From Tubulanus polymorphus (Eukaryota > Animalia > Nemertea), in assembly GCF_964204645.1 (NCBI RefSeq), contig NC_134033.1:4054231-4118230 (forward strand): a stretch of DNA of 64,000 nucleotides, written 5' to 3'. Positions 2,660 to 53,511 of this stretch are shown here, piece by piece; position 1 is the stretch's first letter, and each line of letters opens with the position of its first letter. The notes below the pieces were generated by a model that was not told the origin of the DNA, ran no database searches, and worked only from the letters and a program-made list of their open reading frames with translations. Both the position numbers and the translations under genes were made by a program.

Positions 2660-3340
2660 TTTTTGGACCAAATTTCATCAAAATTTGTGACGAAAATAAG
2701 GGTCAAAACACAAAATCCTGAATATCTCATTTTAGAGGCCTCAGATCCAAAAACTAACTTCATATTCGTGATCAGCACCCCAAAAAACATGTATGTACCA
2801 AATTTTATTAAAATTGGGCCAAAAAAAAATTTTGACTCTGTACCCCATTTTTGGGTGCATATTTTGGGCATTAAAACCCTTATTTGCCAATGAAGATGAA
2901 TTCCGATTCAAAATCTGATTGCATATCCGGAATCTACACCACAGAATACATCTTCCTACCAAGTTTACAAGGAATCAGAGAAAAAAAATTTTTCGCCGAA
3001 AAAAAACTCCTGGATTTTACACCTTAGATTTTTGCCGTTTTTGGCCAAAAAATCGAATCTCTTCGATTTGCTTAAAATTTTAGTCCTTACTATTTTCAGG
3101 GGCGCTGATTCCAAATCTGCAATCAGATTTTGAATATCTCGAAAATTCTGGGGTCCAAGGCCTTTTGACAATTTAGGGGTCCCCCCAAAAATTAGAATTT
3201 CTCATTTTTGGGGCCTCGGATCCGAAAAATTCTTTCAGATTTGTAATCAGCACCCCAGAATACATGTATATACTGAATTTCATCGAAATCGGAGACAAAA
3301 AATATTTGACCCCTGACCCTCATTTTGGGGGTACCTTAGA
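2660..3340. mobile_element. Probable DNA-transposon subterminal region with direct and inverted AATCAGCACCCC-like motifs
   Basis: The motif appears at about 2770 (+), 2930 (+), 3105 (-) and 3245 (+). 2905-2945 is an imperfect inverted copy of 3098-3135. No coding capacity. Confidence 0.4.
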
Positions 3341-3699
3341 TTGCCATTTCTCTGATACACCGGTAACTAGACTTAACTCTAACTCTGTATGTTTGATTGA
3401 TGGCCTTAAATCTATTAAGTTTCATGTATATTTTTAGGATGTTTGTCATCAATATGGTGGAACTATGATCAGGACTACATCAGATGGTGTGGGCAGTGTT
3501 CAAACTCAGCGACAGGATAAACAAACAAACGAACTCATATTGGGAGAACTTGACTTCAGTTATAGTGAACTTTATGTCCACGAGGACAAAATAATAACAT
3601 TACTGCTGATGGGATTATCTGTTTGAACTAGAAACTGTTAACGGTATTCTAGATAGAAAACAAGAGGAACATAAGTTCAGGTGATATGCCATCCTATCC

Positions 3700-4345
3700 T
3701 CTCTATCTCTTTCTATCCTCTCTCATTCTCACTCTCTCCTCACTCTGTTTCATTCTCACTCTCTCCTCACTCTGTCTCATTCTCACTCTCTCCTCACTCT
3801 GTTTCACTCCTCATCTCTCCTCACTCTGTCTCATTCTCACTCTCTCCTCACTCTGTTTCACTCTCATCTCTCCTCACTCTGTCTCATTCTCACTCTCTCC
3901 TCACTCTGTTTCACTCTCATCTCTCCTTTCTCTGTCTCATTCTCACTCTCTCCTCACTCTGTTTCACTCTCATCTCTCCTCACTCTGTCTCATTCTCACT
4001 CTCTCACTCTGTTTCACTCTCATCTCTCCTCATTCTGTCTCATTCTCACTCTCTCCTCACTCTGTTTCACTCTCATCTCTCCTTTCTCTGTCTCATTCTC
4101 ACTCTCTCCTCACTCTGTTTCACTCTCATCTCTCCTCATTCTGTCTCATTCTCACTCTCTCCTCACTCTGTTTCACTCTCATCTCTCCTCACCTCACTCT
4201 GTCTCATTCTCACTCTCTCCTCACTCTGTTTCACTCTCATCTCTCCTCACTCTGTTTCACTCTCATCTCTCCTCACTCTGTCTCATTCTCACTCTCTCCT
4301 CACTCTGTTTCACTCTCATCTCTCCTCCTCTCGTCTCATTCTCTA
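3700..4345. repeat. Pyrimidine-rich compound minisatellite (26-27 bp units CACTCTGTCTCATTCTCACTCTCTCCT / CACTCTGTTTCACTCTCATCTCTCCT)
   Basis: Alternating units seen directly; they explain the low-complexity ORFs 3681-4364 and 3686-4438. Confidence 0.95.
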
Positions 4346-4467
4346 TTACCATCTACCGGGTTGAAATGGGAACTAATTCCTGTCTCGCCCGGTAGATGGC
4401 ATTATTTTTTTGATAAAATTTGCTTAAGCAATGGATAAATATGAGTTCCTCTGTGTGCTGCCAGTAC

Positions 4468-4843: not shown

Positions 4844-5222
4844 CGGAGTAGAGTCTGCGTCTCGAGGTTTGGAGATGGTGCTTTAGTCGGAGTAGAGTCT
4901 GCGTCTCGAGGTTTGGAGATGGTGCTTTAGTCGGAGTAGAGTCTGCGTCTCGAGGTTTGGAGATGGTGCTTTAGTCGGAGTAGAGTCTGCGTCTCGAGGT
5001 TTGGAGATGGTGCTTTAGTCGGAGTAGAGTCTGCGTCTCGAGGTTTGGAGATGGTGCTTTAGTCGGAGTAGAGTCTATGTCTCGAGGTTTGGAGATGGTG
5101 CTTTAGTCGGAGTAGAGTCTGCGTCTCGAGGTTTGGAGATGGAGTGGAGTCTGCATCTCGAGGTTTGGAGATGGTGCTTTAGTCGGAGTTGAGTCTGCGT
5201 CTCGAGATTTGAAGATGTTGCT
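4844..5222. repeat. 44-bp tandem repeat, about 8.5 copies
   Basis: CGGAGTAGAGTCTGCGTCTCGAGGTTTGGAGATGGTGCTTTAGT repeated head-to-tail; distal copies are degenerate and there are no spacers. Confidence 0.95.
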
Positions 5223-5596
5223 GTAACTCAAATATAGCCGGCTGAAAAACAAATCGGATAATCGTCAAGCTATTGAAGAAGATTGAATATGCAAAATGTA
5301 AGGATGGGTGTAGTTTAATATAATTACCTTATCTTAATGTAAAGATACCGAAACAGCAAAATGTGGGTTGATGCGGTTCCCAATGCAGCAGCAGCGGCAG
5401 ACTAGTTAGGACGTTGCGACAAACGAGTTGTGTACATGTAGTAGTAGCGAACTGGTTTCGGTTTAACCCTAAAAAGACACAATATTCATAATGTATGAAT
5501 GTGCGCGAAATAGAACATCGGAAATCAGCGACAACAGCAACTCGTCTTCATCAGCAAATTAGCCGTAATCTGTTTGTAGTTGAAATCAGACATCAA

Positions 5597-12188: not shown

Positions 12189-12412
12189 TCATTCCCAGGC
12201 CTAGCTCATTCTCAGACCTAGCTTATTCCTAGACCTAGCTCATTCCCACCACACCTAGCTCATTATCAGACCTAGCTCATTCCCGCCAGACCTAGCTCAT
12301 TCCCGCCAGACCTAGCTCATTCCCAGACCTAGCTCATTCTCAGACCTAGCTCATTCCCAGACCTAGCTCATTCCCAGACCTAGCTCATTCTCAGACCTAG
12401 CTCATCCCGCCA
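12189..12412. repeat. 17-20 bp minisatellite (CCCAGACCTAGCTCATT), about 12 copies
   Basis: Seen directly. Confidence 0.92.
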
Positions 12413-12996: not shown

Positions 12997-15818
12997 TCAG
13001 TCAGTATCGGGAGTCGTTTGAATGCAAACTGCTGGCTGCTGAACACCGAAATCTTGGTAATCCAAATCTACAAAAAAAAATCAATTGAAAATTAACATAC
13101 CGGTACGTGAACTGAACAGAGCAAGGCGCATCTTTGAAAGCTGGCCGAAGGTCGACCTTGCGACGCGACGCGATCGTCGCGTTGCGTCACAAGTGGCTGC
13201 ACAAGTCGGTTGCGACGCGATAAGCCTTTTTACAGTTTCCAGGCGCCATTTTTTTGGGTACCCGCCGGGTCCGCATTGTTGAAATTTTTGTCCCTATTTT
13301 ACTCCGGTTTAATTTTTTTATTTCGTTGATATCGTCTTCCCGATAATTCAACTTGAATTATTGCTCATCTCATTCAAAAGTTCGTAATTCTTACAAATTT
13401 TAATCTACATTTTTGAAGTTTTCAGGATCAATAGCCATCTATATGTGGTCCTATATACCTTTTACCGTTTTCAATTATCCGTATTAGTTTTTAAGTAGTT
13501 GCGAGTCAAACTTCCAAAACACGTTTTCCCGGGTCCCCTGCGTGCATCTATATATCAGGAAATTTCACAATTTCACCGGTCCCTACTTCGTTGAAAATCA
13601 ATTTTTTAAGTAACCAGAGAAATAAGGGCTCCTAGGTTTTTGAAAAATGGTAATTAAAGATATATATTCTCTAGGATTTGTCAAAATAAACGAAATAACC
13701 CAGGCGTTGCTTTAACCAGCTATCTAGGTTCGCAACAGAAATTATCATTTTGTCCAACATGTTTCATTCGATTCCAAAACTGCACGTACGGCTATACGAT
13801 TGCAAATGTGAAAGTCAGACATTTTCCGTATATTAAGGCTGCGAGTAGGGTGCTCCTCGGTGTTGAAACAAATACATCCAAAACAATTTAATTTGCAAAA
13901 GGATGAGTGTTAAATTTGTAGGCTTTAAGCGATCACTGTCTTGACAAAGATGGTAACCTTAATGGGAAGGAGCGGGGGTCCGGACTACCGACCCTCCAAA
14001 CCCGTAGTCTGTCCCTGTTTTACTAGAAATATATCTCTATTTACCATTTTTTTTCAAATAACTAGGTGCCCTTGTTTCCATAGTTACGGAAAATTTTGAT
14101 TTTAACAAAGTAGGACCGGTTGAATTGTCAAATTTCTTGATATAAATATGCAAACATGATACTCTAGAAAACGTGTTTTGGAAGTTTGACTCGCAACTAC
14201 TTAAAAACTAATACGGATAATTGAAAACGGTAAAAGGTATATAGGACCACATATAGATGGCTATTGATCCTGAAAACTTCAAAAATGTAGATTAAAATTT
14301 GTAAGAATTACGAACTTTTGAATGAGATGAGCAATAATTCAAGTTGAATTATCGGGAAGACGATATCAATGTTTATAACTTCACCAGTGCGCATTGTTGC
14401 ATTAACTTAACAAATGAGTGATATCATAAAAAAGTTTATTATCCGCCGAGTTCATCGATATTTTCACTTTGTTTCTATCTTTATCCAATCCAGAGATATG
14501 AACGAAATAGAAATATTAAACGGGGAAAAAATAGGGACAAAAAATTCAACAATGCGGACCCGGTGGGTACCCAAAAAAATGGCGCCTGGAAACTGTAAAA
14601 AGGCTTATTGTCAGCGACTGTGTGCGACTATTTGCTCTCCAGTCGCAAGAGCGCGTAGATCGGTTGCGATGGTCGCGTCGCGTCGCAGAAAGTAGAACAT
14701 GTGCGACTCATTGCGACTGGCGTTGCTGGCAGTCGCAAGGTAGCGTAGGTCGGTTGGTCGTTGCGACGCGATCGTCGCTGGCGGTCGCAGTAAGTCGCGT
14801 CGCAGTGAGTCGCAAGGCCGACCTACGCCCGGCTTTAGATAGCTGGGCGTAGGTCGGTCGTATTTCGCGGCGTAGTAATTAAGAATGGTATTTCCATCGA
14901 AATTGTGTTAAATAGGGTGGTAGATTTCTAACGGATTCCTGTAAGATCCGCCTACACTCACTCCAGCCGGTAGTATGGCCGATGACGTCGTAGTTGAAGA
15001 TGGACTTGACCTTGACCTCGATGACGCCGTCTGCGGGTACGTCCTTCATGATGAAGAACGCGCCGTATTTAGCGCGTTCGGTCGTTCGCCACGCCTCTTC
15101 TCCCGGCCATCGGTAATTCACTTCGTAAATGGCATTTCTAAAGATAAAAAGAAAACTGACTTGAAAGTTTATTGACGTCTTGAAGAATAACCCACATATT
15201 GCTCGATATTGTCGACAACGAATGATATACTATGAATGATATATTATCAAGGATCAAGAAAGTTATTTCTAATTTGAATATATCGACAATATTGAACGCC
15301 AACCAGTCCAGCCCCAATATCAATGACGTAGTACACACATCCACTCCCACAATATCCCGATTACCATTAAAATTCGCTATCATAAGGGTCATCTTGGTTC
15401 TATAACCAATACAATAACTTAAGGCTAGTCTCAAGATTTAGGAACACTTGTACTGAAGGTACGATGCGCAACTGATCCCAGAACGCCCCAAAACTTTTAT
15501 TGTAAAAATCTTCTTTCTTTGAATATGCTTCTACGTAAAAAATAAAACGCACAGTTATATGAAGAAAAGTCTATTTTCTAACTGCTTCGGGGTTACTCCT
15601 AAAACTCCATCATCAAAGAAACTTAAAACAAAAATGCTTCTACGTGCATCCCTCGGAAGAACTATTTCCATACCTGTAATTGTGAAATGTTAATTGCGTC
15701 CAGAATTTGTTTTTTTCGGTGAATCGGTACTGCATGTTACCGCGCACCGGACACGGTACCATTTTCCACGAATTCGGGATCCAGCCCGACGGAAGCTGCA
15801 TCGCGATATCGAAACCAC
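12997..15818 (-). CDS. Expansin-like protein (EXLX/YoaJ type; end of DPBB domain plus CBM63 domain), three 3' exons, 5' exons not found
   Basis: Exons 15818-15674, 15137-14962 and 13067-12997 have GT/AG boundaries and matching phases (2, then 1), a stop TGA and AATAAA right after. Spliced peptide: GFDIAMQLPSGWIPNSWKMVPCPVRGNMQYRFTEKNKFWTQLTFHNYRNAIYEVNYRWPGEEAWRTTERAKYGAFFIMKDVPADGVIEVKVKSIFNYDVIGHTTGWNLDYQDFGVQQPAVCIQTTPDTD*. It fits the expansin pattern FD...G.I...W..VPCP..GN..YRF.....W......N....I..V. Confidence 0.8.
13137..14837. mobile_element. GC-rich MITE (possibly PIF/Harbinger-like) interrupted by a foldback element, inside an intron of the expansin-like gene
   Basis: TIRs AAAGCTGGCCGAAGGTCGACCTTGCGAC / GTCGCAAGGCCGACCTACGCCCGGCTTT, with internal GTCGC/GCGAC motifs. 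Confidence 0.65.
13221..14607. mobile_element. Foldback-type non-autonomous DNA transposon with long (about 450 bp) inverted arms
   Basis: Ends TAAGCCTTTTTACAGTTTCCAGGCGCCATTTTTTTGGGTACCC and its reverse complement at 14565-14607. 13326-13528 is the reverse complement of 14167-14369. Confidence 0.85.
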
Positions 15819-16416
15819 CTTCAACAAAAACGAAATAAACATCATCGATCTATAAAACCAGGGACGTCTCATTACATTTCCCTGATAAAACCAACGAGGG
15901 ATTTCTGGTTAATTTAATGGGCCCAAGAGACCGGTTCCGTAGTCAGGACTTCAGACCAAAAGTGGTCATAACCGTTTGGTGCCCACCCGTTTTTCCCTCA
16001 AAAGGTCTTTAGTGCCCAAGGTATATGGCCGATGCAATTAAACAACGAGCTAGGATACTACTAAAATCATCATAACTTTTTAAAGTATGAAGATAGACAG
16101 ATAATCTTTACACCAAATGAAAGGTAACTTTCACAGCTATCAGATAATGCAGAATAACATATTACATATATATGATTACCCCAAAAATAATGACAAATCA
16201 CACCTCATAAAAATTTTTAAACTTCATGAAGAAAATACAATATTTTTTTGGCAAAAGTATATCTAAATGTCAAATAAAGAAACAAATCACACAAAATGGT
16301 ATATTTCCTAAGTTATATCCAAAAATCAAGCCATTTCCTCAATAAAGAAAAGGGTTAAACCTTAACACTGGTCTTAAATTATTAGATTGGCTATAGAATT
16401 AAGTTTGTCTTGGAAC

Positions 16417-19400
16417 TGTTGTGGAGTTGCTTTCGGTTCTCCAACAATGTTGCGGGGTTGAATTTCTCAACCAATTGTTGTGGGGGCCACGTTGCGTTCT
16501 CCCCTCGTGTTGTCGTTGTTGGTTCCGATTAATCCGATAAGTGATATCCCTCTGACTCCGGAATAATAACAACTCTTCTCGTGGGTCTACGTTCTTTCTT
16601 TATTTTCCCGCACAATTCTTATTCCTTCCTACAGCTCGTATTTTTAGGCTTCTCCGCCACTCTCGCATCTCTCTCCCCCTTACTGTGCTGACCCTCCCTT
16701 TTTATCTTATTTCATGTTACTCGTGACGTATACTTCTACATATGTTATACGTCACGAGTTTATTACTTGTTTACTTCCTAGCCATACCAGAGCCCAAGGC
16801 TGCCACTATAACCAGCAACCTTACGCAGATACTCACGTCACTTTCATCTATCTTCTATTCAGTGTCTTGTGTGCGACGTAAGCATCTACGTAGGTTGTTT
16901 ACTAACTTCAGCCACTGCCCTGAACTCTGGTTTCCCTCCCTCTATGCAAACTACTAATTTATCACCCCAATACTATCCTCCTCCCCAGACGATTGGTCCC
17001 CAATCGCCAAAAATTCACAAGACCCTATTGTAGTTTCCCAAAAAAAAAAAAACTTTTCAAAAGTGCACAGGCTTCAGAACATCATTTATAAGCAACATCT
17101 CTTACAACTTAAAGCCAGCCGCAGGGTAATGAAAATTACACAAAACCTTCAGAACATCAAGACTAATGATACACAACCACCATTCCGTACATCAATTTAC
17201 AACACCTGTAAAGTAGCCATAAATCACAATTTCTGACCCTTTCCCCTATTATCCCATCCCGCATAACTTCTACCTAAACTAAGCAACACACCCCACTCAT
17301 CATCAGTTCATCTGATTCATCAACGAGACCTACATGGACCCCATAGAATTTTACGGTAAGCAAAAAATATTTCTAAATACTTATAAACTTAACACACGAA
17401 CTTTATCTAAGGGAAAGTAATCATCTACAAATATCAAATATGAGACTCTTTTCATCAGTAATATATAACAATTATGAGGCATGTACATCTGTATATTGAT
17501 CTTACATTTAATAAGAACAAGCCTATACAATTGTAGTCATGCAAAAAAACATATCAAACACAACTTCCCAAATAGCTTTCATAGACAATCACCCATTTCT
17601 CTATATCCACATTTATGTAGTCTCATAATTTAACAATATATGACCAACCACTTCAACCTTCTGACTCTTCTCGTTCTCGTTATCTTTACCAAAAAAAAAT
17701 AATCAGTGTGTGCAGCCTAATTTGTCTTTAAAATTACCATTGCAAACACGTCAATTTCCCACTGTCCAAACTATCAGCCGTTACCTTAACCGATATCAGA
17801 TGATTTGTCAAACCTGTCCCGACCCCAATCAACGACGTAAATTAATACAGATGCCAGATACATCATTTAGTTGATTATTATGTGCCCAGCACACGTTGGC
17901 AACATACATGCTCAACAACGAATTCACAAACAATTTCATAATAATTTTTCTATGTGTACGTAACATAAAGGTAAGCCAAAACATACCAAAAATGAATATA
18001 CCGCATGCGTACATTCGCATTATTGAGATATCAGCTGCTAGTCCCCACCCATTTCCTCAGAAAGCACATTTATCCGTAGTCTAGGCAGGGATAACATGAA
18101 CTGCTATTTGCGGCTTGGAACCGTTGAAATAGACAGGCAGGCCGCCATATATTTATGGAAGGATGTCATAAAGTGACCACAAAACTCATTAAGATGCATC
18201 ACCCAAAAGTTAGGGAAAATTCCTCTGGACACTACTCATTCAGTGCCATTCAAACAGCCGATTCTCAAAAATTAACTTTAACTCCTGGGCCTATGGTCTT
18301 CCAAACCACCCACATCTGATATTCGAATTGTTCTAATTCCTTCCCGCAAATCAGGGGATATAACCCCACATGTAAAACGGCCGACGCCTCATCCTGTATA
18401 TAAACCGGTCAAGACGGACTGAAAGTTCGGAAAAAAACATAGCGCTCACACATCCCTGCAATCTACGACCATTCAGTTAAGATACCCAATCTACCGAATA
18501 ATACTTATCATACTTATTGTATTACGCAATGAGCAACCCTTTACTTCTAAAAAACCAATCCCCTGAATGGCCATTTCAGCATACCTAACAAATAGCTGTA
18601 TCGTGACATTTCTCATTTCCGTATCATCCCCCATGTCACGCCTTACCGGAGTAAAATAAAATCTATGGATAAATAGGGAACCGGCCGACGAATCACCCAT
18701 TTGGTATTTCTTGATATTCGACCCTAATTATGCCCAACATATATATCCAATCTCTCCCAGAGGCCAGCCACTAAACATTATACTGTTTCAAAGGATCTTC
18801 AGAATCCTTCGGGCTATAATCCCCCGTTTTATTCCGGACCATCCCTAGAGCATCCCTTACTCTTCATCCAGGTCCCTGGTCCACCTTAATTCATTTCATA
18901 TAAACAACTCTATTCAAACCCCCTCCGGTAAGATTCACCACTGAGCGCCCAATCTAACCTTTGCACAATAAACATATTCTATACTAACTCGCGATACTCA
19001 TTATATTTCTTAAAACCACATAAACACCACAGTTATTTGTTAGGTATATACAGGCAGTGAGCGCTTTCAACTATCGTTACACTGATAACCGAGTGGCTCA
19101 CCTAGACTAATAAATCATTCTTTCGCGAAATACCATCCAGCAAATTTAGCAAACTATAAAAGATTTACGTAGTGCATATTTATATCTACGTAGATACAAT
19201 AACCCAGCACACAAGCAAAAAACGCTGAGCATTATTCTATAAAAGCAACCAAAACATGCAGAAATACATATCATATTATTTACAATTACTATAAGCCGCA
19301 ATCGTAGTCCGTTGAACGTCTCCAAGGTCGATTTCCCGTAGCAGATCTATGAACTGTCCGATGATGAAATGCGTTTGTATAATGCCTCTAATACCCCACT

Positions 19401-20456
19401 GTATTTCATTTATCGCGTTACGATCGCAGAATCGCTTCGTTTCCGAACGCCATTATGTCCGTTAATTCACACGAATCTAAATTCGGAGTAGTGAATCCAA
19501 TTTTCTGCCATGTAAAACGTAGTGTCCAAAACACGATCTTACGAAAACGCCACACCAAATCGGATAATTCAATTAATTTAAATATGGAAAGAAACAACTA
19601 CTTTCCGCACTGGAAGCTCTATAATTCATTTCAACTGAATCTGACGATACGAAGATTACATATTTCTCGAATAAGACAAACAAACAGCTATTAAATCCAG
19701 ACGGGAATGATTTTTATACACAGATCGAGTTATCCGCAATATTTCAACTTAACCCGCGGTAGCGGCCCGTATTTCATGTAATTATAACGGTTACGGAATG
19801 TAACGTTCATCTTACACTTTTACTTCACCCCTGTTCACTCACCAAATATACACGATCGCTTGGCAGCGAGAGGTGCAGGATACACCACTGTTCTCCACCA
19901 ATGTTGTGGAGTTGCCTTCGGTTCTCCAACAATGTTGTGGGGTTGAGTTTCTCAACCAATTGTTGTGGGGGCCACGTTGCGTTCTCCCCTTGTGTTGTCG
20001 TTGTTGGTTCCGATTAATCCGATAAGTGATATCCCTCTGACTCCGGAATAATAACAACTCATCTCGTGGGTCTACGTTCTTTCTTTATTTTCCCGCACAA
20101 TTCTTATTCCTTCCTACAGCTCGTATTTTTAGGCTTCTCCGCCACTCTCGCATCTCTCTTCCCCTTACTGTGCTGACCCTCCCTTTTATCTTATTTCATG
20201 TTACTCGTGACGTATACTTCTACATATGTTATACGTCACGAGTTTATTACTTGTTTACTTCCTAGCCATACCAGAGCTCAAGGCTGCCGCTATAACCAGC
20301 AACCCTACGCAGATACTCACGTCACTTTCACCTATCTTCTATTCAGTGTCTTGTGTGCGACGTAAGCATCTACGTAGTTTGTTTACTAACTTCAGCCACT
20401 GCCCTGAACTCTGGCTTCCCTCCCTCTATGCAAACTACTAATTTATCACCCCAATA
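16417..20456 (-). mobile_element. Non-autonomous or decayed Gypsy-type LTR retrotransposon; LTRs at 16417-16972 and 19902-20456
   Basis: Two highly similar direct repeats of about 555 bp. On the minus strand a PBS TGGTGGAGAA (tRNA-Ala-like 3' end) follows the 5' LTR and a PPT GGGGAGGAGGA precedes the 3' LTR. The 2.9-kb interior has no long ORF and no TSD is visible. Confidence 0.88.
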
Positions 20457-21348
20457 GTATTCCATCAATTGTAGTGAGCAGTCCTGATTTATTATATACT
20501 TGAATTAACGGGTTAGAGATGTTCCAATCTGATATTTTGTAAACTTGCCAGAGTAGCTTCGACTTCAAACTACTTTCAATTTCAATACGTGCTTTGTTAG
20601 TTTTAGTATAAAACGATGAAGGCGGATGTCCGGTTTGTTCTCGTATAAGAGCTATAGGTTCACTGGTGCTGTTCCATCCGTCGGAAATTTGAGGACGAGT
20701 TTTCATCGGATCCTCACCTGGTCTTAATCTGAAATCTATCTGTATAAACGTTAAATTCATTGCAAACCCGTCTGGCATCCCGATCCATTCTAACAACAAT
20801 TTACAGCGGAGGGTAGAAATCATGAATTCATAACCTGTTTGAGTTGGTAATTCTTTTACTGCATGCTTGTGACATGTATATACAATTTTCAAGTGACTCT
20901 GTTCTTCAAACCGATATATGATGTTAACCCGACTACCTCGCGCTCCATCGACGTTACTCCTAAACAACAACGAAATCAAACCGTTACTGCGGATATCAAG
21001 TTGTTTTCTTCCATTAGCGCAGAGTTTGTTGCCGGACTCACCGACTAGAAGGTAGTTTTCGTTACAGAATATCGACGGCTCGATGTCGTAGTAAACTTGA
21101 ACGAGAAAACTTCCCGGTAAAGAGCTGTTGACGAACCAACGACATTCAACACCGCGCACTAACGACGGATAGTTCGGTGAAACGATGTAACCAGACGTAG
21201 AATCGACGGAGTATTGAGTGTTGTTACAAGATGAACTGACTGTAACAGACGCGGCTTCCTCGACAGAGTTTGCGCGATCAGCCCGCGTAAATATACAGTC
21301 TCCGCAAGCGATCAGTAAAACTACGAACAACGCTTTCATTCGCTGCAT
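20457..21348 (-). pseudogene. GRL101-like GPCR copy 1: exon 1 only (signal peptide plus CUB), truncated by the LTR element
   Basis: Paralogous to exon 1 of the other copies up to ...GLLTTIDGI, where it runs into the LTR; exons 2-3 are absent. Confidence 0.85.
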
Positions 21349-21889
21349 ATTGAACACAATTCACGCTTCAAAACAAACACATTTCTAACTATTTCTAAGT
21401 TTGCGCGACATTTCTCATAAGAGTGGCTGCAAAGTAATGACGAATTCGCAAATGTTTAAAGTTGACGAATTAATTGAGTCCAATTATTTTGTATAAAAAC
21501 TCTCCCATCAAACTGGCGCCAGTCTCGTATTTGTAAAACTTTCATCTGTTCTCGGTTTCGCTGTAATTACCGCGGCTTCTAAATTTAGACGTGCTTCAAT
21601 ATATCGTGTCTATAATCGTGTGCGATTATTTCGCTAAAAATATTTACTGTCGCTCCCGAACTGCGTTTTGATATCCGAACCAGTTTTTGATAAGGTTCGA
21701 TGATATTTTCTATCTATACTTCAGAATATTCTGCGTCTCTGTAAAAGACTTCGTCAATATCTGTTTTGACAATTCACACTCTACAGTCAATATAATAACT
21801 GAGTTGAAGCTAGATGAAGCGCGTGGATATCTGATTGTGGCGGGTAAGGACTTGTTCTGTGCAGACTTTTTGAGGAAACAACTCAATCC

Positions 21890-22629: not shown

Positions 22630-25600
22630 AGTCCGGTATTATCTAGCCAGTGGTGTAGGTGTCCATTGAACCGCATTATGACAAACTCAGTTCATATTGT
22701 GGCCTGTTCTTGTCCTCGATCTTTGAAATCATGTAGTACGTGTTCGATTTGAATTGAACCAATTCTGATGATTCATTCGTAACATACGTTGAATTCACTA
22801 TACACGCGCATATATGTCCAGTCCTTACGTGAGGTTACGTAAGTGAAAAGGGAGATCTATAAGTTTTTTTCCACTAATTTAGAGACTAATTTGCGAAGTT
22901 GCCGAGGGATGCTTTCGACAATTCACATCTCGTGTAAAATTAGTCTACTTGACTCCCTATCTCTGGGATCTCACTCGGGCATCCAACCTAAACTTAAAAA
23001 TTAATTCTTCCAGTCAGAACTGAAATATGAAATTGTTGTTTTTCAGATTAGTCATTCCTCACTCAGGACCTGATTGCTGCCAATACAAGACTCCAGGCTT
23101 TTCTAAAAAATCCATGATGCATCACACAGAAATTGGTGGTGAGTAGATTTGTGGGTTTTTGATAATGGATATAACAGATTACATTGTACATGTATCGAGG
23201 CAAATTTAAAATTATTATTGAGATCAATACTTTTTTCAGATAAGCTCTACTTCCTCGGGACCTGATTGCTGTCAGTGCGTGCTGGACTTAACCAACAAGA
23301 CGGGACATATTTTAGTGCTGTAACTTGGGTGTCAAATCTCCCAATGAAACGATAACTGATCGTTATAATCCATGAAGTTCCACTCATGAATTGGTGAGAA
23401 GACATTTTAATTTCAATTTTAAATGTCAAACTTAAGTTAGGTCGGATTCAAGCTGATTCAAGTCAAATTAAACACTTTAGTTGCTTTTTCAGAGAAGATC
23501 TTCCTGAGCAGGATCTGATTGTTGACTAAACCGACAAATACAGTTTCCAGATTCCAGACCTTCCTCACTTCATTAGGACCTGATTTTGTTTTAAAACAAA
23601 AAACAACCTTTATAGGAAATTTATTAGAACACGTTCAGAAAAAATAAAATCAAAATACAACTCGTACAAAAATCTCATTTCAAAGCTTATTAACAAAGCC
23701 GAATCTAATTATTATTCTGAAAAATTGCTCGCTGCTGGAAATGATATGAAAGAAAAGTGGAAACTGTTGAACACAGTTTTAGGTAGAAACATTTATTCTA
23801 AAATGCCTAATTCTTTTACTTCTGATCAACGTGTTATTTCTGGTAATATAAACATCGCCAACGAGTTTAACAATTTTTTTGCAAATATTGGTGAAAGGCT
23901 TGCTACTCAAATCCCTGATACAGGGCAATCCTTTCATCAATATATGAATAAACGTGTCAATGAAAGTCTATTTCTCTTTCCGACTTCACCTCATGAAATA
24001 AGTGATGTGGTCTCGGGTTTCCCCTTAAAGAAGAGTGCCGGTGTCGATGGTTTGAGTATTTTTGTTATAAAACAGGTGATTGACATCATTAAGTTCCCTT
24101 TATCCCATATCTTTAACCGTAGTCTTCAGACTGGAATAGTTCCCAATGAACTCAAAATTGCGAAAGTTTGTCCTTTGTTTAAATCCGGAGCCCCTAATTC
24201 TTTAAATAATTATCGACCCATATCTTTGCTTCCTAGCTTCTCAAAAATTCTGGAAAAACTAGTTTACAACAGATTGGTTTCCTTTTGTAACAAACAGGAT
24301 ATTGTAACCCCCGACCAGTTTGGCTTTCGTTCAAAACATTCAACAGATTTGGCATTAACCAAGGTTGTTGATAATCTTTCTGAAGCCTTGGAAAATAAGA
24401 ATATTACTATTGGATTATTCTTGGACCTGTCTAAGGCATTCGACACCGTTAACCATGACATTTTGTTAATGAAGCTTGATTATTACGGAATCCGAGGTGT
24501 TCCTCATGATTGGTTTAAAAGCTACCTGACTGACAGGAGTCAAGTTTTAAGTTTCAACAATACCTTATCGTCTCCATTAAATGTATCAATTGGTGTACCC
24601 CAGGGTTCTATTCTAGGCCCTTTGTTATTTTTATTATACGTTAACGATTGCATAAATGCGTCCAAATTACTCCATTTTATCCTCTTTGCCGATGACACGA
24701 ATTGTTTTTATAGTAACTCTAATATCAAAGAATTGGTTTCCATAGTAAATTCTGAACTGGCGAAACTTGGCATCTGGTATCAAGTAAACAAACTTTCAAT
24801 AAATATTGCGAAATGCCACTTTATGATTTTTGGTCGTGTAGATCACTTTAATTCTTCCATTTGGTTAAATGGAGAATTAATCAAACGTGTACATAGTACG
24901 AATTTTCTTGGTCTTTTTATAGATGACAAATTAAATTGGGATGTCCATATCAAATATGTCTGCAGTAAAGTGTCACGCTCCATTGGAATTTTAACCAGAT
25001 TAAAAAAGCATTTCCCATCAAATATCCTTATTACCCTTTATTATAGTTTTGTTTATCCTCATTTACAATATTGTAATTTAATCTGGGGAAGTAATTATGC
25101 AAACAAGCTAAATCCACTTATTCTACTACAAAAAAAGAGCAGTAAGAATAGTTAATAAGTCTCATTTCCTAGAACACACTGACCCTATCTTCAAAAAATT
25201 GAATATCCTAAAATTTAGACATATTACAAAATTTCATTTAAGTCTATTTATGTTCAAATTCAATAATTCAAAATTGCCAAATTCCTTTAATCGGTATTTC
25301 AAAAAGAATGTTGATATACACTCGTATTCAACCAGAAATATGAATTCTTTTCGTGTTGCCAGATTTCGGACTAACAAAACACAATTCACAGTAAAAATTT
25401 CTGGTCCTGTTGTCTGGAATAATTTGCCAAAAAGTTTAAAACAACTGTCGTGTATAGATACTTTCAAAAGAAAACTTAAATTGTATCTAATGAATTTGTA
25501 ATTAATCTGTCTGTATCTGCCATCTATTACCAGATTGTAAGAGTGAATGAAAGATAGTGTGATTGACCGCCTGAGTGACTACGTGTGTGGGTGCATGTTT

Positions 25601-39700: not shown

Positions 39701-42700
39701 TTGAATTAATTAAAATAACATCGGGAATAATTTGATCTCTGGTTCTATTTAAGTCTGTATTTGTTGAATTGTTCGCGTCGTTTATCGTTGAATTGTGTTT
39801 GTTTTTGATGTCGATTCTCTCAGATTCACAATCACAAATGAATGTCGTGTGCGTCTCCTCGATTTGACACGGGAATCGAACCCAGTTCGCTGATCCTCGT
39901 GGATTATTCAGTATCATCGCCGTACACGGCATATTGACGTCATTTATCGGTTGTTTTCTTAGCAGAGATATCAATCCTCGAATAACTTCTGGTATCGTTT
40001 CATTAATAACAGGTTTATACCACTCTGTGTAGCTCAAAGGTTTACCGTCAGTCCACGTGTAATAACCATCATTCTGTTTCGTGAAGAAAATGAAATATAT
40101 CACTTCTTTAAAAATCTTTCTATTTTAATTAATATTGGAATACATTAGTCTTACCTTCCATTTTAATCCAATCATCATTATGAGCGCTTTTAATGTGTAC
40201 GCCATTCGGAGAAGTCGTGTAGCGAATAATCTTTTGATGGAAATCATTTCCTGTTCTGAGTTGATGCTGAGTAGATGTCCCGCGTACTTCTGTCTACAGT
40301 ATATTTCAGCGTTCTCCCAATTCAGACGTTCATCTCTGATGAATTTGATGCAAGAAATCCCAGAATCCAGAAATCCTTGTTTACAGTAGAAATCATCGAA
40401 ATGTTTAATCGGTAACGACTCGTGTAAAGTGTATTGTATTTGAAATGTTGGAATACGATTCTTAACTTCAAAACGCAGAGTATTATCTGTTAAACTATAA
40501 AATATAAGTCCACGAACCGCATTATTTTCACATATTTTAGTTTCATGTTGGGTACTAATAATTTTAAACATTTTTCCATTTAGGAAAAGGGTGAAAATCA
40601 TAAGCTGCACCAAAATGATAGGATCTTTCACGCTGTTTGTTTCACACGAAACAAATCCAATAGATTTGACAATGAATCTGTAATATTGAAATATATTTGG
40701 TTGCATCGGGTTTTCAAATTCATATGAAATCGATTCTGATGTACGTCGTGCCTCACCCGGGTAGTTCGGTGACTGCACGAGTCCACATTTATCTTTAGTA
40801 GTAACTGGAAGACGGGAACCGGCAAATCCAAAACTATCCGCTTTTTTCACTCCTAGACATTTACGACGTAGTTTAACTATCAGTGGTTCCCGCCAGAACC
40901 CGAACTCATTAACTGTGAAATCTGCAGTGTTTAATACGAGACTGTTATTAAGAAACTGATTACTCAAACTCAGAAACTGATCACATGGCAATGACATCTT
41001 GAGAAAACATCGGTCAATTTGATATTCGTGTTCTGATAATATGTGAATATTTTTCAAGCGAAGGCGTCGATTTTCAGGTGTAATCACGATACAGTGTGAC
41101 GTCATATTGATCTGACGTTCTTCTTCCTGTAGAACATAACCGTCACAATCAGTAGGAGCGAATGTAAGATATGACCTGCTGGGATCACCATCTGTTAACT
41201 GATTGTTATAGTAATAAGCGTATGCTACTACAGTAACCGGTCCACCTGATGTAATCAGGCTGACGACAGATCGACCGTAGTATGAACCAGGACAATAAGG
41301 ACCATAGCGTCTAGCTGTGAAATTACTACCATCAAATATATAAAAACCAGCTCGATCACAGTTTTCTGATAGCACTGTTAGTTTCAACTGTTTTTCATAG
41401 ATGTTCACTTTCCAGTTTAGTTGTAATGTAGTTACACGATACAATGTATTCTTTGATCTCGGGAACAAACGATTAGCTGATAATGACGTCGTGCTTACAT
41501 AATTCTGAAATATTAGAGAATTGTTTACAACATTGAACGTTTACAATACAACAATTTCAAACTCTGTACGACCTCGATATTTTGATAATAGTTCAAAATG
41601 TTGCAATCAAATATTAACTTAAATTCTTCCACAAATCATCATAATTACTCTGCGTAAACAACGAGTGCGTCCGAATATATTGTAATTTGGGTCACACATA
41701 ACGTTGTTATTCCATGTTTCTCGGTAAAGTTTAACTGGTCAAAATCGACATCGAAATCATAGATGATTACAATGATTCTATTACACGAACCTAATCTACG
41801 AATCACTGTTATAACTTACCCATATCTGTTCCTTGTTGACGTAAACGTCTGATATTGTCATCGACTTCACTTCATATTCTATTTTCAAATTCGATCCTAA
41901 AAAATCCGATGTCGTCAAAACGCACAGAATCACGAGAAATCCGTCTGATTTTACACTCAGAGATTTAAGATGGTTAAAACTGAGTAAAATATCAGTTTTC
42001 ACAATACGTAACCCTTCCTGTTTATATACACCAACGACACCTGGTGACGAGACGAGATCACGTTTCCAGTTGAAGACGACGTACTGCAGAACATCGACTG
42101 TGATAGACCAGCAGTATAAGTGTTTAGACTGAGTTACTATATGTGGTATTCCATCAATTGTAGTGAGCAGTCCTGATTTATTATAGACTTGAATTAACGG
42201 GTTAGACATGTTCCAATCTGATATTTTGTAAATTTGCACGAGTAGCTTCGACTGAAAATATGGGTATCCTATTGAAATAAATTCAATACGTGCTTTATTA
42301 GTTTTAGTATAAAACGATGAAGGTGGATGTCCGGTTTGTTCTCGTATAAGAGCTATAGGTTTACTGGTGCTGTTCCATCCGTCGTAAATTTGAGGACGAG
42401 TTTTTATTGGATCCTCACCTGGTCTTAATCTGAAATCTATCTGTAACAACGTAAAATTCATGGCAAACCCGTCTGGCATCCCGATCCATTCTAACAACAA
42501 TTTACATCGCGCGGTAGAAATCGTGAATTTATAACCTGTTTCAGTTGGTATTTTGTTAACTGCATGTTTTGAACATGTATGTAAGATTTTCAAGCGACTC
42601 TGTTCTTCATAACGATATATGATATAAACCCGACTACCTCGCGCTCCATCAACGTTACTCCTAAACAACAACGAAATCAAATCGTTACTGCGGATATCTA

Positions 42701-43049
42701 GTTGTTTTCTTCCGGTAGCGCAGAGTTTGTTGTCGGACTCACCGACGAGAAGGTAGTTTTCGTTACAGAATATCGACGGCTCGATGTCGTAGTAAACTTG
42801 AACGAGAAAACTTCCCGGTAAAGAGCTGTTGACGAACCAACGACATTCAACACCGCGCACTAACGACGGATAGTTCGGTGAAACGATGTAACCGGACGTA
42901 GAATCGACGGAGTATTGAGTGTTGTTACAAGATGAACTGACTGTAACAGACGCGGCTTCCTCGACAGAGTTTGCGCGATCAGCCCGCGTAAATATACAGT
43001 CTCCGCAAGCGATCAGTAAAACTACGAACAACGCTTTCATTCGCTGCAT
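36798..43049 (-). CDS. GRL101-like leucine-rich-repeat GPCR with CUB, C-type lectin and LDLa ectodomain, copy 3 (intact, about 1951 aa)
   Basis: Exons 43049-41820, 41504-40155 and 40073-36798, all phase-0 GT-AG joins. Signal peptide MQRMKALFVVLLIACGDC; CUB motifs (GYIVSPNYP..CRW, CGLVQSPNYPG); a CTLD split by intron 2 (IGLKWK/NDGYYTWTDGKPLSYTEW); about 7 LDLa (CD...DC..GSDE); LRRNT and LRRs; hinge FCC...FSTCSDLM; 7TM with NPLLY. Confidence 0.9.
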
Positions 43050-44509
43050 ATTGAACACAATTCACGCTTCAAAACAAACACTTTTCTAACTATTTCCAAG
43101 TTTGCGCGACATTTCTCAAACGAGTAGCTGCAAAGTAATGACGTATTCGCAAATGTCTGTAGTTGACGAATGGATCAGAGTCCAATTATTTTGTAAAAAA
43201 AAAATCCGCGCATCAAACTGGCGCCAGTCTCGTATTTGTGAAACTTTCATCTGTTCTCGGTTTCGCTGTAGTTACCGCGGTTTCTAAATTTAGACGTGTT
43301 TCAATATATCGTTTTTATAATCACGCGCAATTTTTTCACTCAAAATATATTCACCGTCGCTACTGAACTGCGTACCGAATGATATTTTCTCTTTCGTTAC
43401 TGCAAAATATTCCTCGGGTTCTGTTCAACTGAAATCGAACGTATTTCTTCTATTTTCAAAGACCGAGGACAATAACACGACGCAGTATGAACTGGTTCGG
43501 TCATTTGCCGTTCAATGGACACGAGCACCACCGGCTGGAATAATAGCAGGATAGTACTTATTTCAACATCAAATATCTTCTCGAATACATATCGAATGTG
43601 TGACGTGGATGATCAGATATTCTACCAGTTCTCGGTAACCTTTAGGGTTCGCTTTAAAAGCCGCATTAAATCCCTTTGAAAATCGAATTATCGCGAGCAA
43701 AATTTGTACAACAATACATAGATTTGTAGAGCAGTTTATACCGTGTCGTGCTGTCGGTCACGGGCGATTCCTCGTCCTCGCGAGAATCGGCATCGACAGA
43801 CGATCTCAGCAATCACGGTCGCTCCATGTCCGCCGAGAACGATATCGACACATCAATGAACGGTCAAACTCTTGGAAACGTCAGCTTTGACTTTCCGAAT
43901 GAGTAAATCGCGCTTCGCGTAACTAAGAAATTGAAAATCTATACTCAGATGCATATAAACGAAAATTCTAAATTATTGATTATGTTTGGTAAACAGGACG
44001 GAATATTTCTTTTTGAAATATTGATTCCGATTAAATCGTCAATTTCTGTAGGGAGAGTTTTTCTTAACCAATATTGACCTTGTCGTGGCTTGCTTAACTA
44101 TATAATATGAATACAGTCAACTCCCGATATACAGCCCTCCCATTTACCGTTACCCCCGCCTACCCCCAGGTTTTCTCAATGTACATCTCTTTATACAGAT
44201 ACACGTACATAGTAAACTATAAAGAAGAACATTCGTGATTCATAAATTCTCGTTTGCCTTCGGCGTTCGGTGGATTACGGTGCCGAGTATGGGATATAGT
44301 TCCGCTCGTATTGATTCTGATTCGTTATCGAAAAATCCTCGTGATAATCCGATTATATTCATAAGAAAATAAAAAAGTATGTCTTGTAGTGTGTTATCAA
44401 TACCGTACTAAAAGAAAAATCAAACGAATCACTCTTACACACACACGCTCACACTACATCAGTGAATACATTCATAGATTAATAAGTCGTCATCTATGTA
44501 AACGTCTAT

Positions 44510-48600: not shown

Positions 48601-51600
48601 TCGCATCGTTTATCGTTGAATTGTGTTTGTTTTTGATGTCGATTCTCTCAGATTCACAAATGAATGTCGTGTGCGTCTCCTCGATTTGACACGGGAATCG
48701 AACCCAGTTCGCTGATCCTCGTGGATTATTCAGTATCATCGCCGTACACGGCATATTGACGTCATTTATCGGTTGTTTTTTTGCGGAGATATCAATCCTC
48801 GAATAACTTCTGGTATCGTTTCATTAATAACAGGTTTATACCACTCTGCGTAGCTCAATGGTTTACCGTCAGTCCACGTGTAATAACCATCATTCTGTTT
48901 CGTGAAGAAAATGAAATATATCACTTCTTTAAATATCTTTCTATTTTAATTAATATTTGAATACATTAGTCTTACCTTCCATTTCAATCCAATCATCATT
49001 ATGAGCGCTTTTAATGAGTACGCCATTCGGAGAAGTTCTGTAGCGAATAATCTTTTGATGGAAATCATTTCCTGTTCTGAGTTGATACTGAGTAGATGTC
49101 CCGCGAACTTCTGTCTACAGTATATTTCAGCGTTCTCCCAATTCAGACGTTCATCTCTGATGAATTCGATGCAGGAAATTCCGGAATCCAGAAAACCTTG
49201 TTTACAGTAGAAATCATCGAAATGTTTAATCGGTAACGACTCGTGTAAAGTGTATTGTATTTGAAATGTCGGAATGAAATTGTTTACTTCAAACCGCAGA
49301 GTATTTCCTCTTAAACTATAAAATATAAATCCACGAACCGCGTTATTTTCACATATTTTAGTTTCATGTTGAGTTTCAATGGTTTTGAAATATTTCCCAT
49401 TATGAAAGGGTTCGTAATTGATTGATTGTATCAAAATAATCGGATCATTTCGACCGAATCTGTCTGTTTCACATGATACAGATCCAATAAATTTGACAAT
49501 AAATCTGTAATATTGAAATATATTTTGTTGCATCGGGTTTTCAAATTTATATGTAATAGATTTTGATGTAAATCCTGCCCAACCCGGGTAGTTCGGTGAC
49601 TGCACGAGTCCACATTTATCTTTAGTAGTAACTGGGAGACGGGAACCGGCAAATCCAAAAATATCCGCTTTTTTCACTCCTAGACATTTACGACACAGTT
49701 TAAGTATTAGTGGTTCCTGCCAGAATACAAACCCTCCTGCTAAATCAATAGTGTTTAATACGAGACTGTTATTAAGAAACTGATTACTTAAACTCAGAGA
49801 CAGATCACATCGCAATGAAATCTTGAGAAAACATCGGTCAATTTGATATTCGTGTTCTGATAATATGTGAATATTTTTAAAGCGAAGGCGTCGATTTTCA
49901 GGTGTAATCACGAGACAGTGTGACGTCATATTGATCTGACTTTCGTCTTCCTGTAGAACATAACCATCACAATCAGTAGGAGCAAATTTAAGATATGAGC
50001 TACCAACTGTTAACTGATTGTTATAGTAATAAGCGTATGCTACTACAGTAACCGGTCCACCTGATGTAATCAGGCTGACGACAGATCGACCGTAGTATGA
50101 ACCAGTACAATACGGACCATAGCGTCTAGCAGTGAAATTACTACCATCAAATATATAAAAACCAGCTCGATCACAGTTTTCTGATAGCACTGTTAGTTTC
50201 AACTGTTCTTCATAGATGTTCACTTTCCAGTTTAGTTGTAATGTAGTTACACGATACAATGTATTCTTTGATCTCGGGAACAAGTGACCAGCTATTATTG
50301 GTGTCACGCCTCCATCATTCTGAAATATCAGGAAATTGATAACAGCATTGAACGTTTACAATCAATTTTTACGTTTACAATCCTCCCCCATAATAAACTT
50401 TTGTCCCTATGTCTCTGGTCAATATCACCTAGTTTTTATGTGCTATTGTGTGTGTCGTTCTTGCTTAATATATGTACTGTGTAATGCCCATCCTCCCCCG
50501 GCAGGGATTCGAACCTGATGGCATCGAGATTTCCACAGCACGAAACCCTGCCATAATCGACCGTGTGCGCAGATACATGCGCAGTTCAGATGATGTGATT
50601 TTTAGCCAATCAGAAATCCCGTTTTGTTTTAGCCCGGGTTTTCCCATTTATAGTTCTTCCTTGAAATTTGCCTCAACGTTTATACAACGAGCAATCTGAT
50701 TGGTGCCGCCAGTTTTCGTTCGGAAAGCTGCGCATGTACCTGCGCACCCGGTCTACTGATGCAGGGGTTCGTGCCGTGGCTGAGTGTAGCGATGCCATCA
50801 GGTTCGAGTCCCTGCAGAGGGAGGATGTGTAATGCCATACTTTTAGTCACTCTTGAAAATGGTTTTTAGCATAAAACCGAAAAATTCGAGGTTTTTAATA
50901 AATTTTGATAGTTTTGATGTTTTAAAATCTTTATCGATCCTGTGATTGTGGGACTTATATTTCATTCGTTTTTCGATTTATTGCGTAGTTTTATCACATT
51001 GAACAATACAACAATTTCAAATACCCTATTACAATGATTCTATTACACGAACCCAATTTACAAATCACTGTAATAAACTTACCGATATCTGTGGCTTGTT
51101 GACGTAGACGTCTGATATTGTCATCGATTTCGCTTCAAATTCTATTTTCAAATTCGATCTTACAAAATCCGATGTCGTTAAAACGCACAGAATCACGAGA
51201 AATCCGTCTGATTTTACACTCAGAGATTTAAGATGGTTAAAACTGAGTAAAATATCAGTTCTCACAATACGTAACCCTTCCTGTTTATATACACCAACGA
51301 CACCTGGTGACAAGACGAGATCACGTGTCCAGTTGAAGACGACGTACTGCAGAACATCGACTGTGATAGACCAGCAGTATAAGTGTTTAGACTGAGTTAC
51401 TATATGTGGTATTCCATCAATTGTAGTGAGCAGTCCTGATTTATTATAGACTTGAATTAACGGATTAGAGATGTTCCAATCTGATATTTTGTAATCTTGC
51501 ACGAGTAACTGCGACTTCAAACTTCTTTCAATTTCAATGCGTGCTTTATTAGTTTTAGTATAAAACGATGAAGGTGGATGTCCGGTTTGTTCTCGTATAA

Positions 51601-52300
51601 GAGCTATAGGTTCACTGGTGCTGTTCCATCCGTCGTAAATTTGAGGACGAGTTTTCATCGGATCCTCACCTGGTCTTAATCTGAAATCTATCTGTATAAA
51701 CGTTAAATTCATTGCAAACCCGTCTGGCATCCCGATCCATTCTAACAACAATTTACATCGGTAAGCAGAAATCATAAATTCTTGACCTGTTTGAGTTGGT
51801 AATTTTTTTACTGCACGTTTATGACATGTGTCTAAGATTTTCAAGCGACTGTGTTCTTCAAAACGATATATGATATAAACCCGACTACCTCGCGCTCCAT
51901 CGACGTTACTCCTAAACAACAACGAAATCAAATCGTTACTGCGGATATCTAGTTGTTTTCTTCCGGTAGCGCAGAGTTTGTTGTCGGACTCACCGACGAG
52001 AAGGTAGTTTTCGTTACAGAATATCGACGGCTCGATGTCGAAGTAAACTTGAACGAGAAAACTTCCCGGTAAAGAGCTGTTGACGAACCAACGGCATTCA
52101 ACACCGCGCACTAACGATGGATAGTTCGGTGAAACGATGTAACCGGACGTAGAATCGACGGAGTATTGAGTGTTGTTACAAGATGAACTGACTGTAACAG
52201 ACGCGGCTTCCTCGACAGAGTTTGCGCGATCAGCCCGCGTAAATATACAGTCTCCGCAAGCGATCAGTAAAACTACGAACAACGCTTTCATTCGCTGCAT
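45641..52300 (-). CDS. GRL101-like GPCR copy 4 (exons 52300-51083, 50319-48976, 48894-45641) with one 1-bp frameshift in a homopolymer
   Basis: All splice sites are conserved. The distance from the exon 3 acceptor to MPCT is 140 bp versus 141 bp in copy 2, because of a T7 run at 48776-48782. Pseudogene or assembly error. Confidence 0.8.
50489..50827. mobile_element. 339-bp MITE with a 9-bp TSD (Mutator-like) in intron 1 of copy 4
   Basis: TIRs of about 100 bp CATCCTCCC..GCAGGGA(T/C)TCGAACCTGATGGCATCG. TSD TGTAATGCC at 50480-50488 and 50828-50836. Absent from the paralogous intron of copy 2. Confidence 0.9.
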
Positions 52301-53511
52301 ATTGAACACAATTCACGCTTCAAAACAAACACATTTCTAACTATTTCCAAGTTTTCACGACCTTTCTCTAAAGAGTAGCTGCAAAGTAATGACGAATTCG
52401 CAAATGGCAGAAGTTGACGAATTGATCGAGTCCAATTATTTTGTAAAAAAAATCCGCCCCTCAAACTGGCGCCAGTCTCGTATTTGTGAAACTTTCATCT
52501 GTTCTCGGTTTCGCTGTAATTACCGCGGTTTCTAAATTTAGACGTGTTTCAATATATCGTGTTCAAAATCATGTGCAATTATTTCTCTAAAAATATTTAC
52601 TGTCTCTCCCGAACTGCTTTTAGTTTGTGATAATATTACAGGACATTTTCTATCTATACCTCAAAATATTCTGCGTCTCTGTAAAACACTTCGTCAATAT
52701 CAGTTCTGATAATTCATACTCTACAGTCAATATAATAACTGAGTTGAAGCTAAATGAAGCGCGTTGATATCTGATTGTGGCGGGTGAGGACTTGTTCGGT
52801 GCTGACACGGAGAACCAACACCAACCAAGTAAGACGACGATGACAGCGGTAGAATAGAAACTGTGCTCATAACGAGCCAACAAATGCAGCAAACACCGAT
52901 AACGTATTTAGGAGTTATGATCGGACTTCTAGAAAACGGGTTGACTATATTTAGATATATACGATATTTAGAATTGAGAGATATGTTATAGCAGCCTCTA
53001 TTTATTACTCTTGATGATTTGAATAAATATAAATAACTGTGCCAGCTGCTGCTGCTGCTGCTGCTGCGATAGTTCTAAGAAATTCGAGTTTCAGACAATG
53101 GACATTTGATTAATTGAATTTATTGCATATTTACTATGATGATATCGTCTTAATTTTATTTATTTTATGATAAGATTCGTGTTTAATTTCAGCGACGATT
53201 CGAGTTATAGACAATGAAAATGTTATTTATATTACAGACAATGAAGATTTGATTAATTGAATTTATTGCATATTTCCTATGATGATATCATCTTAATTTA
53301 TTCTAGGTGATAATCAATTGCAAATAGTTCTAAGATTCGTGCTTGATTCCTGTGACAATTCGAGTCATAGATAATGGAAATGTGATTGATAAATTGTGTT
53401 GCAAACTGATTTTTCTTTCAATTCGATTTTGAAAGGATTTAAATTACTGCATAGAACTATCATTTTAACGAGGACTGTTAGAGAATATCTGATATTATAT
53501 CTACTTCATAT

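Follow-up and report, generated by a model that had tools for sequence, protein, structure and literature searches.

The stretch of DNA analysed here, called the window below, comprises 64,000 nucleotides of the forward strand of contig NC_134033.1 (positions 4,054,231 to 4,118,230) in the genome of Tubulanus polymorphus, a palaeonemertean ribbon worm, and its minus strand carries three exons coding for the end of an expansin of the EXLX1/YoaJ type. Very likely this unit is a partial duplicate, composed of exons 8–10, of an EXLX-type expansin-like gene and not a complete gene, since the 5' exons are absent, a complete parent exists elsewhere and the breakpoint can be defined. An earlier note, made from the letters of the window only, had announced a hidden expansin-like gene at this place. 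Its exons proved to be real, and the 130 residues that they encode are the 3' end of a ten-exon, two-module gene; what did not hold is the idea of a complete gene.

Three exons and the protein they encode

The three hidden exons, proposed earlier at the same coordinates, were read directly in the sequence together with their AG/GT borders, complementary phases (1/2/1), stop codon and polyadenylation signal:

15818–15674, minus strand: equivalent of parent exon 8 (exon 1 of the earlier note); acceptor AG at 15820–15819 behind a T-rich tract, donor GT at 15673–15672
15137–14962, minus strand: equivalent of parent exon 9; acceptor AG at 15139–15138, donor GT at 14961–14960
13067–12997, minus strand: equivalent of parent exon 10; acceptor AG at 13069–13068 behind a T run, stop codon TGA at 12999–12997
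12992–12987, minus strand: polyadenylation signal AATAAA, beginning 5 nt past the stop codon

All three are translated in frame without stops, and the split codons are restored as Arg (AG+A) and Asn (A+AT). The exon 8-equivalent codes for the last strand of domain 1 with its GFD motif, for the junction of domains 1 and 2 (D1–D2) and for the first strands of the CBM63 domain with an F-W pair. The exon 9-equivalent supplies the core of the beta-sandwich of CBM63 and, within it, the Tyr aligned with Y157 of EXLX1, while the exon 10-equivalent adds the C-terminal 22 residues and TGA, giving the same C-terminus as in the RefSeq proteins XP_074658214.1 and XP_074658306.1. The first of these proteins (124 aa, 97–98% identical to the window exons) is modelled at a paralogous copy located at 4.173 Mb of the same contig (C9 below; 16,481,795 bp out of the 268 Mb of assembly searched) and uses exactly the same splice junctions. 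P0003, a protein of 279 aa from an mRNA-like contig of another organism, runs without gaps over both junctions (residues 145–176, 180–236 and 238–243). Since frames and splice sites are, in addition, kept in nine genomic copies, the exons are more than a chance arrangement of letters.

The first sign of an incomplete unit is that exon 15818–15674 opens in phase 1 and requires one base from an upstream exon. Only the last ~15 residues of domain 1 are coded in the window, and the complete DPBB + CBM63 architecture is not present there. The fragment has no start codon in context, no signal peptide and no N-terminal part of the DPBB domain (~80 residues); the first available Met lies inside exon 8 and gives a product of 124 aa devoid of a signal peptide, and no leader exon was found in the window within 48 kb upstream of the fragment.

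It is well known that W125, W126 and Y157 form the aromatic platform of CBM63 in EXLX1 and that the conserved Asp of domain 1 is D82 in EXLX1 and D78 in CmEXLX2. RefSeq paralogue proteins served as proxies in all searches with the spliced product. Taken alone, window exon 8 matched in the PDB only Xa_EXLX1 of Xanthomonas (9ms4_A, E 0.0022) and YoaJ/EXLX1 (2bh0_A, E 0.024), in both cases at the expansin D1–D2 junction. With XP_074658214.1 four chains were registered, all of them expansins (E 3.9e-6, 2.6e-5, 1.6e-4 and 0.17), the matches spanning residues 92–178. HMMER alignments placed F-W on W125–W126 of EXLX1, where 9ms4 has Y-W, and the Tyr of A-K-Y-G on Y157, so that the aromatic triad recognized by eye in KFW and KYG stands, with Phe instead of Trp at the first position of the platform. 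The GFD motif lies 12 residues past the Asp of V-K-D (in EXLX1 the distance is 11) and closely follows the C-x-G-C motif, for which the alignment with CmEXLX2 reaches residue 76; the Asp itself was aligned by no tool, and both module 1 of the parent and the copy on the small contig C22 have Asn at this position. Judging from the spacing, equivalence of the GFD Asp to Asp82 of EXLX1 is plausible.

A small profile built on the N-terminal portion of DPBB gave its best PDB match with residues 19–76 of the Clavibacter expansin (E 0.021), which has the same pattern of Cys. The AlphaFold model of XP_074658214.1 (predicted local distance difference test, pLDDT, 70.9; seven strands) was submitted to Foldseek, where the first eight rows were entries of bacterial expansins (E 0.002–0.01), as expected for a CBM63 beta-sandwich. 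A search by protein-language-model features in Atlas put the cluster of the EXLX1 family first (0.87, 182 shared features), and parent exon 7 led there to DPBB families. With expansins as the only significant matches in the PDB and on top in both Foldseek and Atlas, the assignment to the EXLX1/YoaJ type made in the earlier note is confirmed, as far as sequence and modelled structure can tell. A PDB match obtained with a fragment-rich alignment used as a profile was discarded as spurious.

Bacterial expansins available for comparison are EXLX1/YoaJ of Bacillus subtilis (2bh0, 3d30, 4fer), Xa_EXLX1 (9ms4), Ss_EXLX1 (9ms5) and CmEXLX2 of Clavibacter (4jcw, 4js7). The nemertean family has in common with them a DPBB domain 1 directly followed by a CBM63 domain 2, the junction motif W-x-V-x-x-P-V/I-x-G-N, an aromatic pair and a Tyr on the face of CBM63 and, plausibly, the Asp-bearing motif that ends domain 1; the D-x-C-x-G-C motif is common with the Clavibacter protein. 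Unlike them, it shows identity of only ~21–30% and no Pfam match; the complete nemertean gene has nine introns, tandem modules and a mucin-like linker, whereas the window copy is devoid of most of domain 1 and of a signal peptide and has Phe as the first aromatic residue. Phl p 2 and Phl p 3, grass pollen allergens of groups 2 and 3 that derive from beta-expansins, are secreted proteins consisting of CBM63 only, each provided with a promoter and a signal peptide of its own. What the window can encode likewise comes close to a lone CBM63 domain, but identity is 12–19% and the window copy shows neither its own promoter nor a signal peptide.

The complete parent gene, its partial copies and the breakpoint

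The middle exon is present in nine copies with 93–100% amino-acid identity, eight of them on C9 and one on C22, and exactly nine copies at 95–100% identity were also found with a 1-kb DNA query. After alignment of ~10 kb around each copy to the window, a single one turned out to be complete. It occupies C9:2,772,348–2,778,033, 1.29 Mb from the window, inside the extracted stretch C9:2,770,751–2,780,724, and is the sole locus with different, informative upstream DNA. The exon model of this parent gene was read by eye and its borders were fixed by a script, which gave ten exons, all GT/AG, with compatible phases (0, 0, 1, 2, 1, 0, 1, 2, 1) and lengths summing to 1,869 nt, that is 622 codons and a stop:

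Exon 1: hydrophobic leader, a signal peptide as judged by eye
Exons 2–5: first DPBB+CBM63 module
Exon 6: Thr/Pro-rich linker of decapeptide repeats, 191 codons
Exon 7: N-terminal part of the second DPBB domain
Exons 8–10: counterparts of the three exons in the window

Exon 7 occurs only once in the 268-Mb genome, which means that one complete gene coexists with eight 3' fragments. On exon-level evidence the parent contains the DPBB+CBM63 architecture twice. Introns following C-x-G-C-P-x-P, the domain 2 N-N/N-Y and G-W coincide in position and phase between the two modules and must, therefore, predate the internal duplication; since the two modules are only 30–49% identical, the gene has long resided in the lineage. 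The complete gene would make a secreted, O-glycosylated, non-hydrolytic protein that binds and loosens polysaccharides, with cellulose, chitin and peptidoglycan as candidate substrates. Introns 1 and 3 of the parent contain arrays of tandem repeats (positions 1780–2340 and 3240–3700 of the extracted locus, L018) with units of ~110 and ~60 nt.

The following features mark the place where the fragment was cut from its 5' part and the elements inserted into its introns:

20446–21357, minus strand: head exon, truncated, of one of the giant receptor genes; flanks the chimeric junction on its left
16417–20460, minus strand: non-autonomous long terminal repeat (LTR) element, LTRs at 20460–19902 and 16976–16417, 97–98% identical
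15819–16416, minus strand: remnant of parent intron 7, beginning right at the LTR end
15149–15337, no strand: dispersed repeat of ~190 nt in the intron between exons 8 and 9
13220–14608, no strand: foldback (long terminal inverted repeat) element of 1.39 kb in the last intron

On its 5' side the expansin fragment breaks off at the LTR element. The LTRs are 560 nt each, and a TGG primer-binding-like site after the upstream one together with a purine tract before the downstream one orient the element like the gene; no target-site duplication was found between its two flanks. The 20 nt past the downstream LTR already belong to parent intron 7: window 16419–16355 matches it at 97% (L018 5621–5685), then the remnant is split by a 383-nt insertion (16354–15972), and 15971–15819 again matches the parent at 97%. 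Between window exon 8 and its counterpart in the complete gene identity is 98%. Letters peculiar to the window copy are those at 15733, where an Ile codon has become Met, and at 14976, where an Arg codon has become His. On the opposite side the receptor head exon, in which a weak CUB match was registered, is cut by the LTR after ~300 of ~420 codons, as follows from the intact head exons at 41796–43058 and 51065–52309. Probably one rearrangement between two LTR elements removed both the 3' part of the receptor gene and expansin exons 1–7.

Three copies share with the window the entire 7 kb upstream at 97–98% identity, and three further ones have the same flanks, the full element being replaced by a solo LTR, so that the chimeric block composed of the LTR junction and exons 8–10 is present seven times. 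The eighth partial copy (C9:3.118 Mb) has another breakpoint, ~50 nt upstream of exon 8, and lies downstream of a complete receptor gene. Such a distribution would be accounted for if the junction arose once and then spread by segmental duplication of the adjoining receptor array. For gene counts the consequence is direct: the window fragment is not to be taken for an extra expansin gene, and searches at the level of exons would inflate the number of expansin genes nine-fold.

The foldback element is specific for the window copy and absent from the eight others. Its inverted arms (114 and 257 nt) are complementary at 92–95%, and the DNA contigs that skip 13219–14608 derive from other copies. 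The ~190-nt repeat gave 717 first-look candidates in the DNA search and ~30 scored matches with 75–80% identity on many contigs. Short GCGAC-rich repeats flank the foldback at 13137–13215 and 14620–14850, with a depth of DNA contigs 10–100 times that of the exons, which assigns them to a high-copy repeat family. Just downstream of the fragment, at 12189–12405, there is a minisatellite of ~12 units of 17 nt, the length of which varies widely among the nine copies.

Silent fragment or young family

As its DPBB domain is reduced to a stub and a signal peptide is missing, the window copy cannot act as an expansin. At most, transcription could begin in the 3' LTR ~600 nt upstream and translation at the exon 8 Met, which would give a CBM63 protein of 124 aa, and it is precisely in this form that RefSeq models a sister copy. 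We consider that the window copy is probably a silent or non-functional fragment; that it yields a transcribed CBM63-only product of unclear use is doubtful.

Several observations weigh against its silence. All nine copies keep three open frames, every splice dinucleotide and AATAAA. At least three sister copies are annotated in RefSeq as protein-coding (XP_074658214.1, XP_074658306.1 and XP_074658308.1), and XP_074658306.1, from the copy at 3.038 Mb, has a hydrophobic, signal-peptide-like leader taken from two small exons ~44 kb upstream. The 22 exonic changes comprise 10 synonymous and 12 non-synonymous ones, and the crude ratio of non-synonymous to synonymous rates (dN/dS) of ~0.3 may reflect either a degree of constraint or gene conversion by the parent. 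Together with the same orientation of the nearby 3' LTR and with Phl p 2 and Phl p 3 among the fold matches, these data might be taken to mean that the truncated copies, including that of the window, make up a young working family, transcribed from the LTR or with a captured leader and producing small CBM63-only proteins like group-2/3 allergens. This explanation seems unlikely to us. The exons are conserved no better than the introns (variable columns make up 5.1–6.2% in exons and 6.4–6.7% in introns 8 and 9), and since the copies have diverged by only 1–3%, with about one disabling change to be expected in the whole set, their intact frames are what chance would give. As to the window itself, its upstream 48 kb offer no leader exon, neither it nor any of the 10-kb loci contains the leader peptide of XP_074658306.1, the RefSeq protein cluster does not include its product, and its last intron has received the foldback insertion. 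The locus was found in three runs, all of DNA and none recorded as RNA, and no joints 15674/15137 or 14962/13067 are present in their contigs. We also see little chance that the eight partial copies represent a newborn LTR-driven family cut from a long-resident expansin, in which one captured leader restored secretion. If this were true, small carbohydrate-binding proteins would have been co-amplified with an array of CUB/lectin/LDLa/LRR receptors, possibly acting together with it. Similar pairs of leader exons were noticed on C9 at 2844176, 3152692, 3823000 and 3984052, and a pair of small exons coding for a signal-peptide-like leader at C9:2994582–2995200; one such pair is joined by RefSeq to the 3.038 Mb fragment.

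Two other explanations concern the nature of the protein and of the DNA itself. The expansin likeness could have arisen by chance in an unrelated FN3- or Ig-like beta-sandwich. Against the expansin assignment it may be said that neither Expansin_C (PF01357) nor DPBB_1 (PF03330) of Pfam was matched at E up to 10 by the exons, the RefSeq models or P0003, that exon 9 alone and its three-row profile retrieved only noise and no expansin from the PDB, and that the Foldseek E-values are weak, with TM-scores of ~0.4 and with FN3 domains in the same list (E 0.04–0.1). However, every significant PDB match by sequence is an expansin aligned at the right position (residues 92–179 of chains ~200 residues long), the upstream exon of the parent matches expansin domain 1, and P0003 aligns to YoaJ over both domains. 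A better match to FN3 or Ig, which the earlier note had named as a sign against an expansin, was not seen: in Foldseek the FN3 domains, as well as Phl p 2/3 (E 0.02–0.09), stand below the bacterial expansins. An FN3- or Ig-like origin is, therefore, highly improbable. A further possibility, that microbial or dietary DNA entered the assembly as contamination or as an artefact, has to be mentioned because expansin genes annotated in animals were suspected to be contaminants (bioRxiv 10.1101/637728), but for the nemertean locus its probability is negligible. The introns are spliceosomal and contain animal repeats, the nine copies lie in segmental duplications, and contigs from three DNA runs cover the locus, which is embedded in a 16.5-Mb contig among LDLa/LRR/seven-transmembrane (7TM) receptor genes, a Pao retrotransposon and a reverse transcriptase of the long interspersed nuclear element (LINE) type. 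The view of the earlier note that this is an animal locus is, in this way, upheld, and the preferred reading of the window remains that of a partial duplicate of a resident gene.

Residence in the animal lineage, distant relatives and neighbours

Among 1.84 billion representatives, phmmer with parent exon 7 found three matches, P0003 among them. Another one, P0001, is a multihaem cytochrome and was rejected as a false positive. P0003, the closest full-length relative in this collection, comes from a contig of 906 nt (Logan run SRR28369062) with AATAAA near its end. It runs collinear with the window exons and is built of a signal peptide, one DPBB+CBM63 module and a tail rich in Ser and Thr; its alignment to YoaJ extends across both domains (E 3.2e-7). 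It is 31–36% identical to the window exons (36% with E 3e-6 for exon 9 in BLASTP) and 49% identical to parent exon 7, but it consists of a single module and has Asn where nemertean module 2 has the Asp of GFD. The AlphaFold model of P0003 (pLDDT 49.6) was too poor for a fold search. Word-based searches for homologues with P0003 and with the fragment-rich alignment returned only P0003 itself and two RefSeq clusters of T. polymorphus. P0002 is a lone DPBB-type exon, 45% identical to parent exon 7, at positions 4989–5255 of a 90-kb contig (ENA ERZ25072724); no CBM63 exons were found within 5 kb of it on this eukaryote-like metagenome contig.

In prokaryotic genomes no relative of XP_074658214.1 was detected, and the collections searched contain no close prokaryotic relative, the best bacterial identities being ~21–30%. 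From the distribution of the family horizontal acquisition is plausible and, if it took place, it was old. The intron positions that the two modules have in common speak for a gene long established in the animal lineage.

No nemertean expansins were found in the literature searched. Expansins of Oikopleura and of marine bivalves were flagged as unconfirmed cellular genes with possible contamination, and the expansin-like proteins of nematodes have a reversed order of domains (bioRxiv 10.1101/637728); in mesocytes of Spongilla a protein resembling YoaJ was annotated from its structure (PMC10176882). The nemertean family resembles these cases as a microbial-type expansin homologue in an animal genome and differs from them in that the gene has introns and resides on a large animal contig. 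An EXLX-type expansin with nine introns on a contig of 16.5 Mb is, thus, a clear counter-example to the contamination view. RefSeq names its products “uncharacterized protein”, and their identification raises the question of which polysaccharide is loosened or bound by a ribbon worm that lives as a predator and secretes a tube.

The expansin fragment lies just downstream of a tandem array of giant receptor genes (26472–58291, minus strand). Each of them has two head exons of ~420 and ~450 codons, with no Pfam match except for one weak CUB, and an exon of ~1100 codons with C-type-lectin-like sequence, five LDLa repeats, LRRs and a rhodopsin-type 7TM domain. At 58924–63993 on the minus strand there is an intact gag-pol open reading frame (ORF) of 1689 aa belonging to an LTR retrotransposon of the Pao/BEL type (Peptidase_A17, RVT_1, integrase and DUF5641). 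An ORF of 476 aa at 23725–25155 on the plus strand matches RVT_1 (E 8e-35) and is probably a fragment of a non-LTR element. Long ORFs in two frames at 3681–4438 cover a serine/leucine/histidine-rich tandem repeat, which probably represents a satellite rather than a gene.

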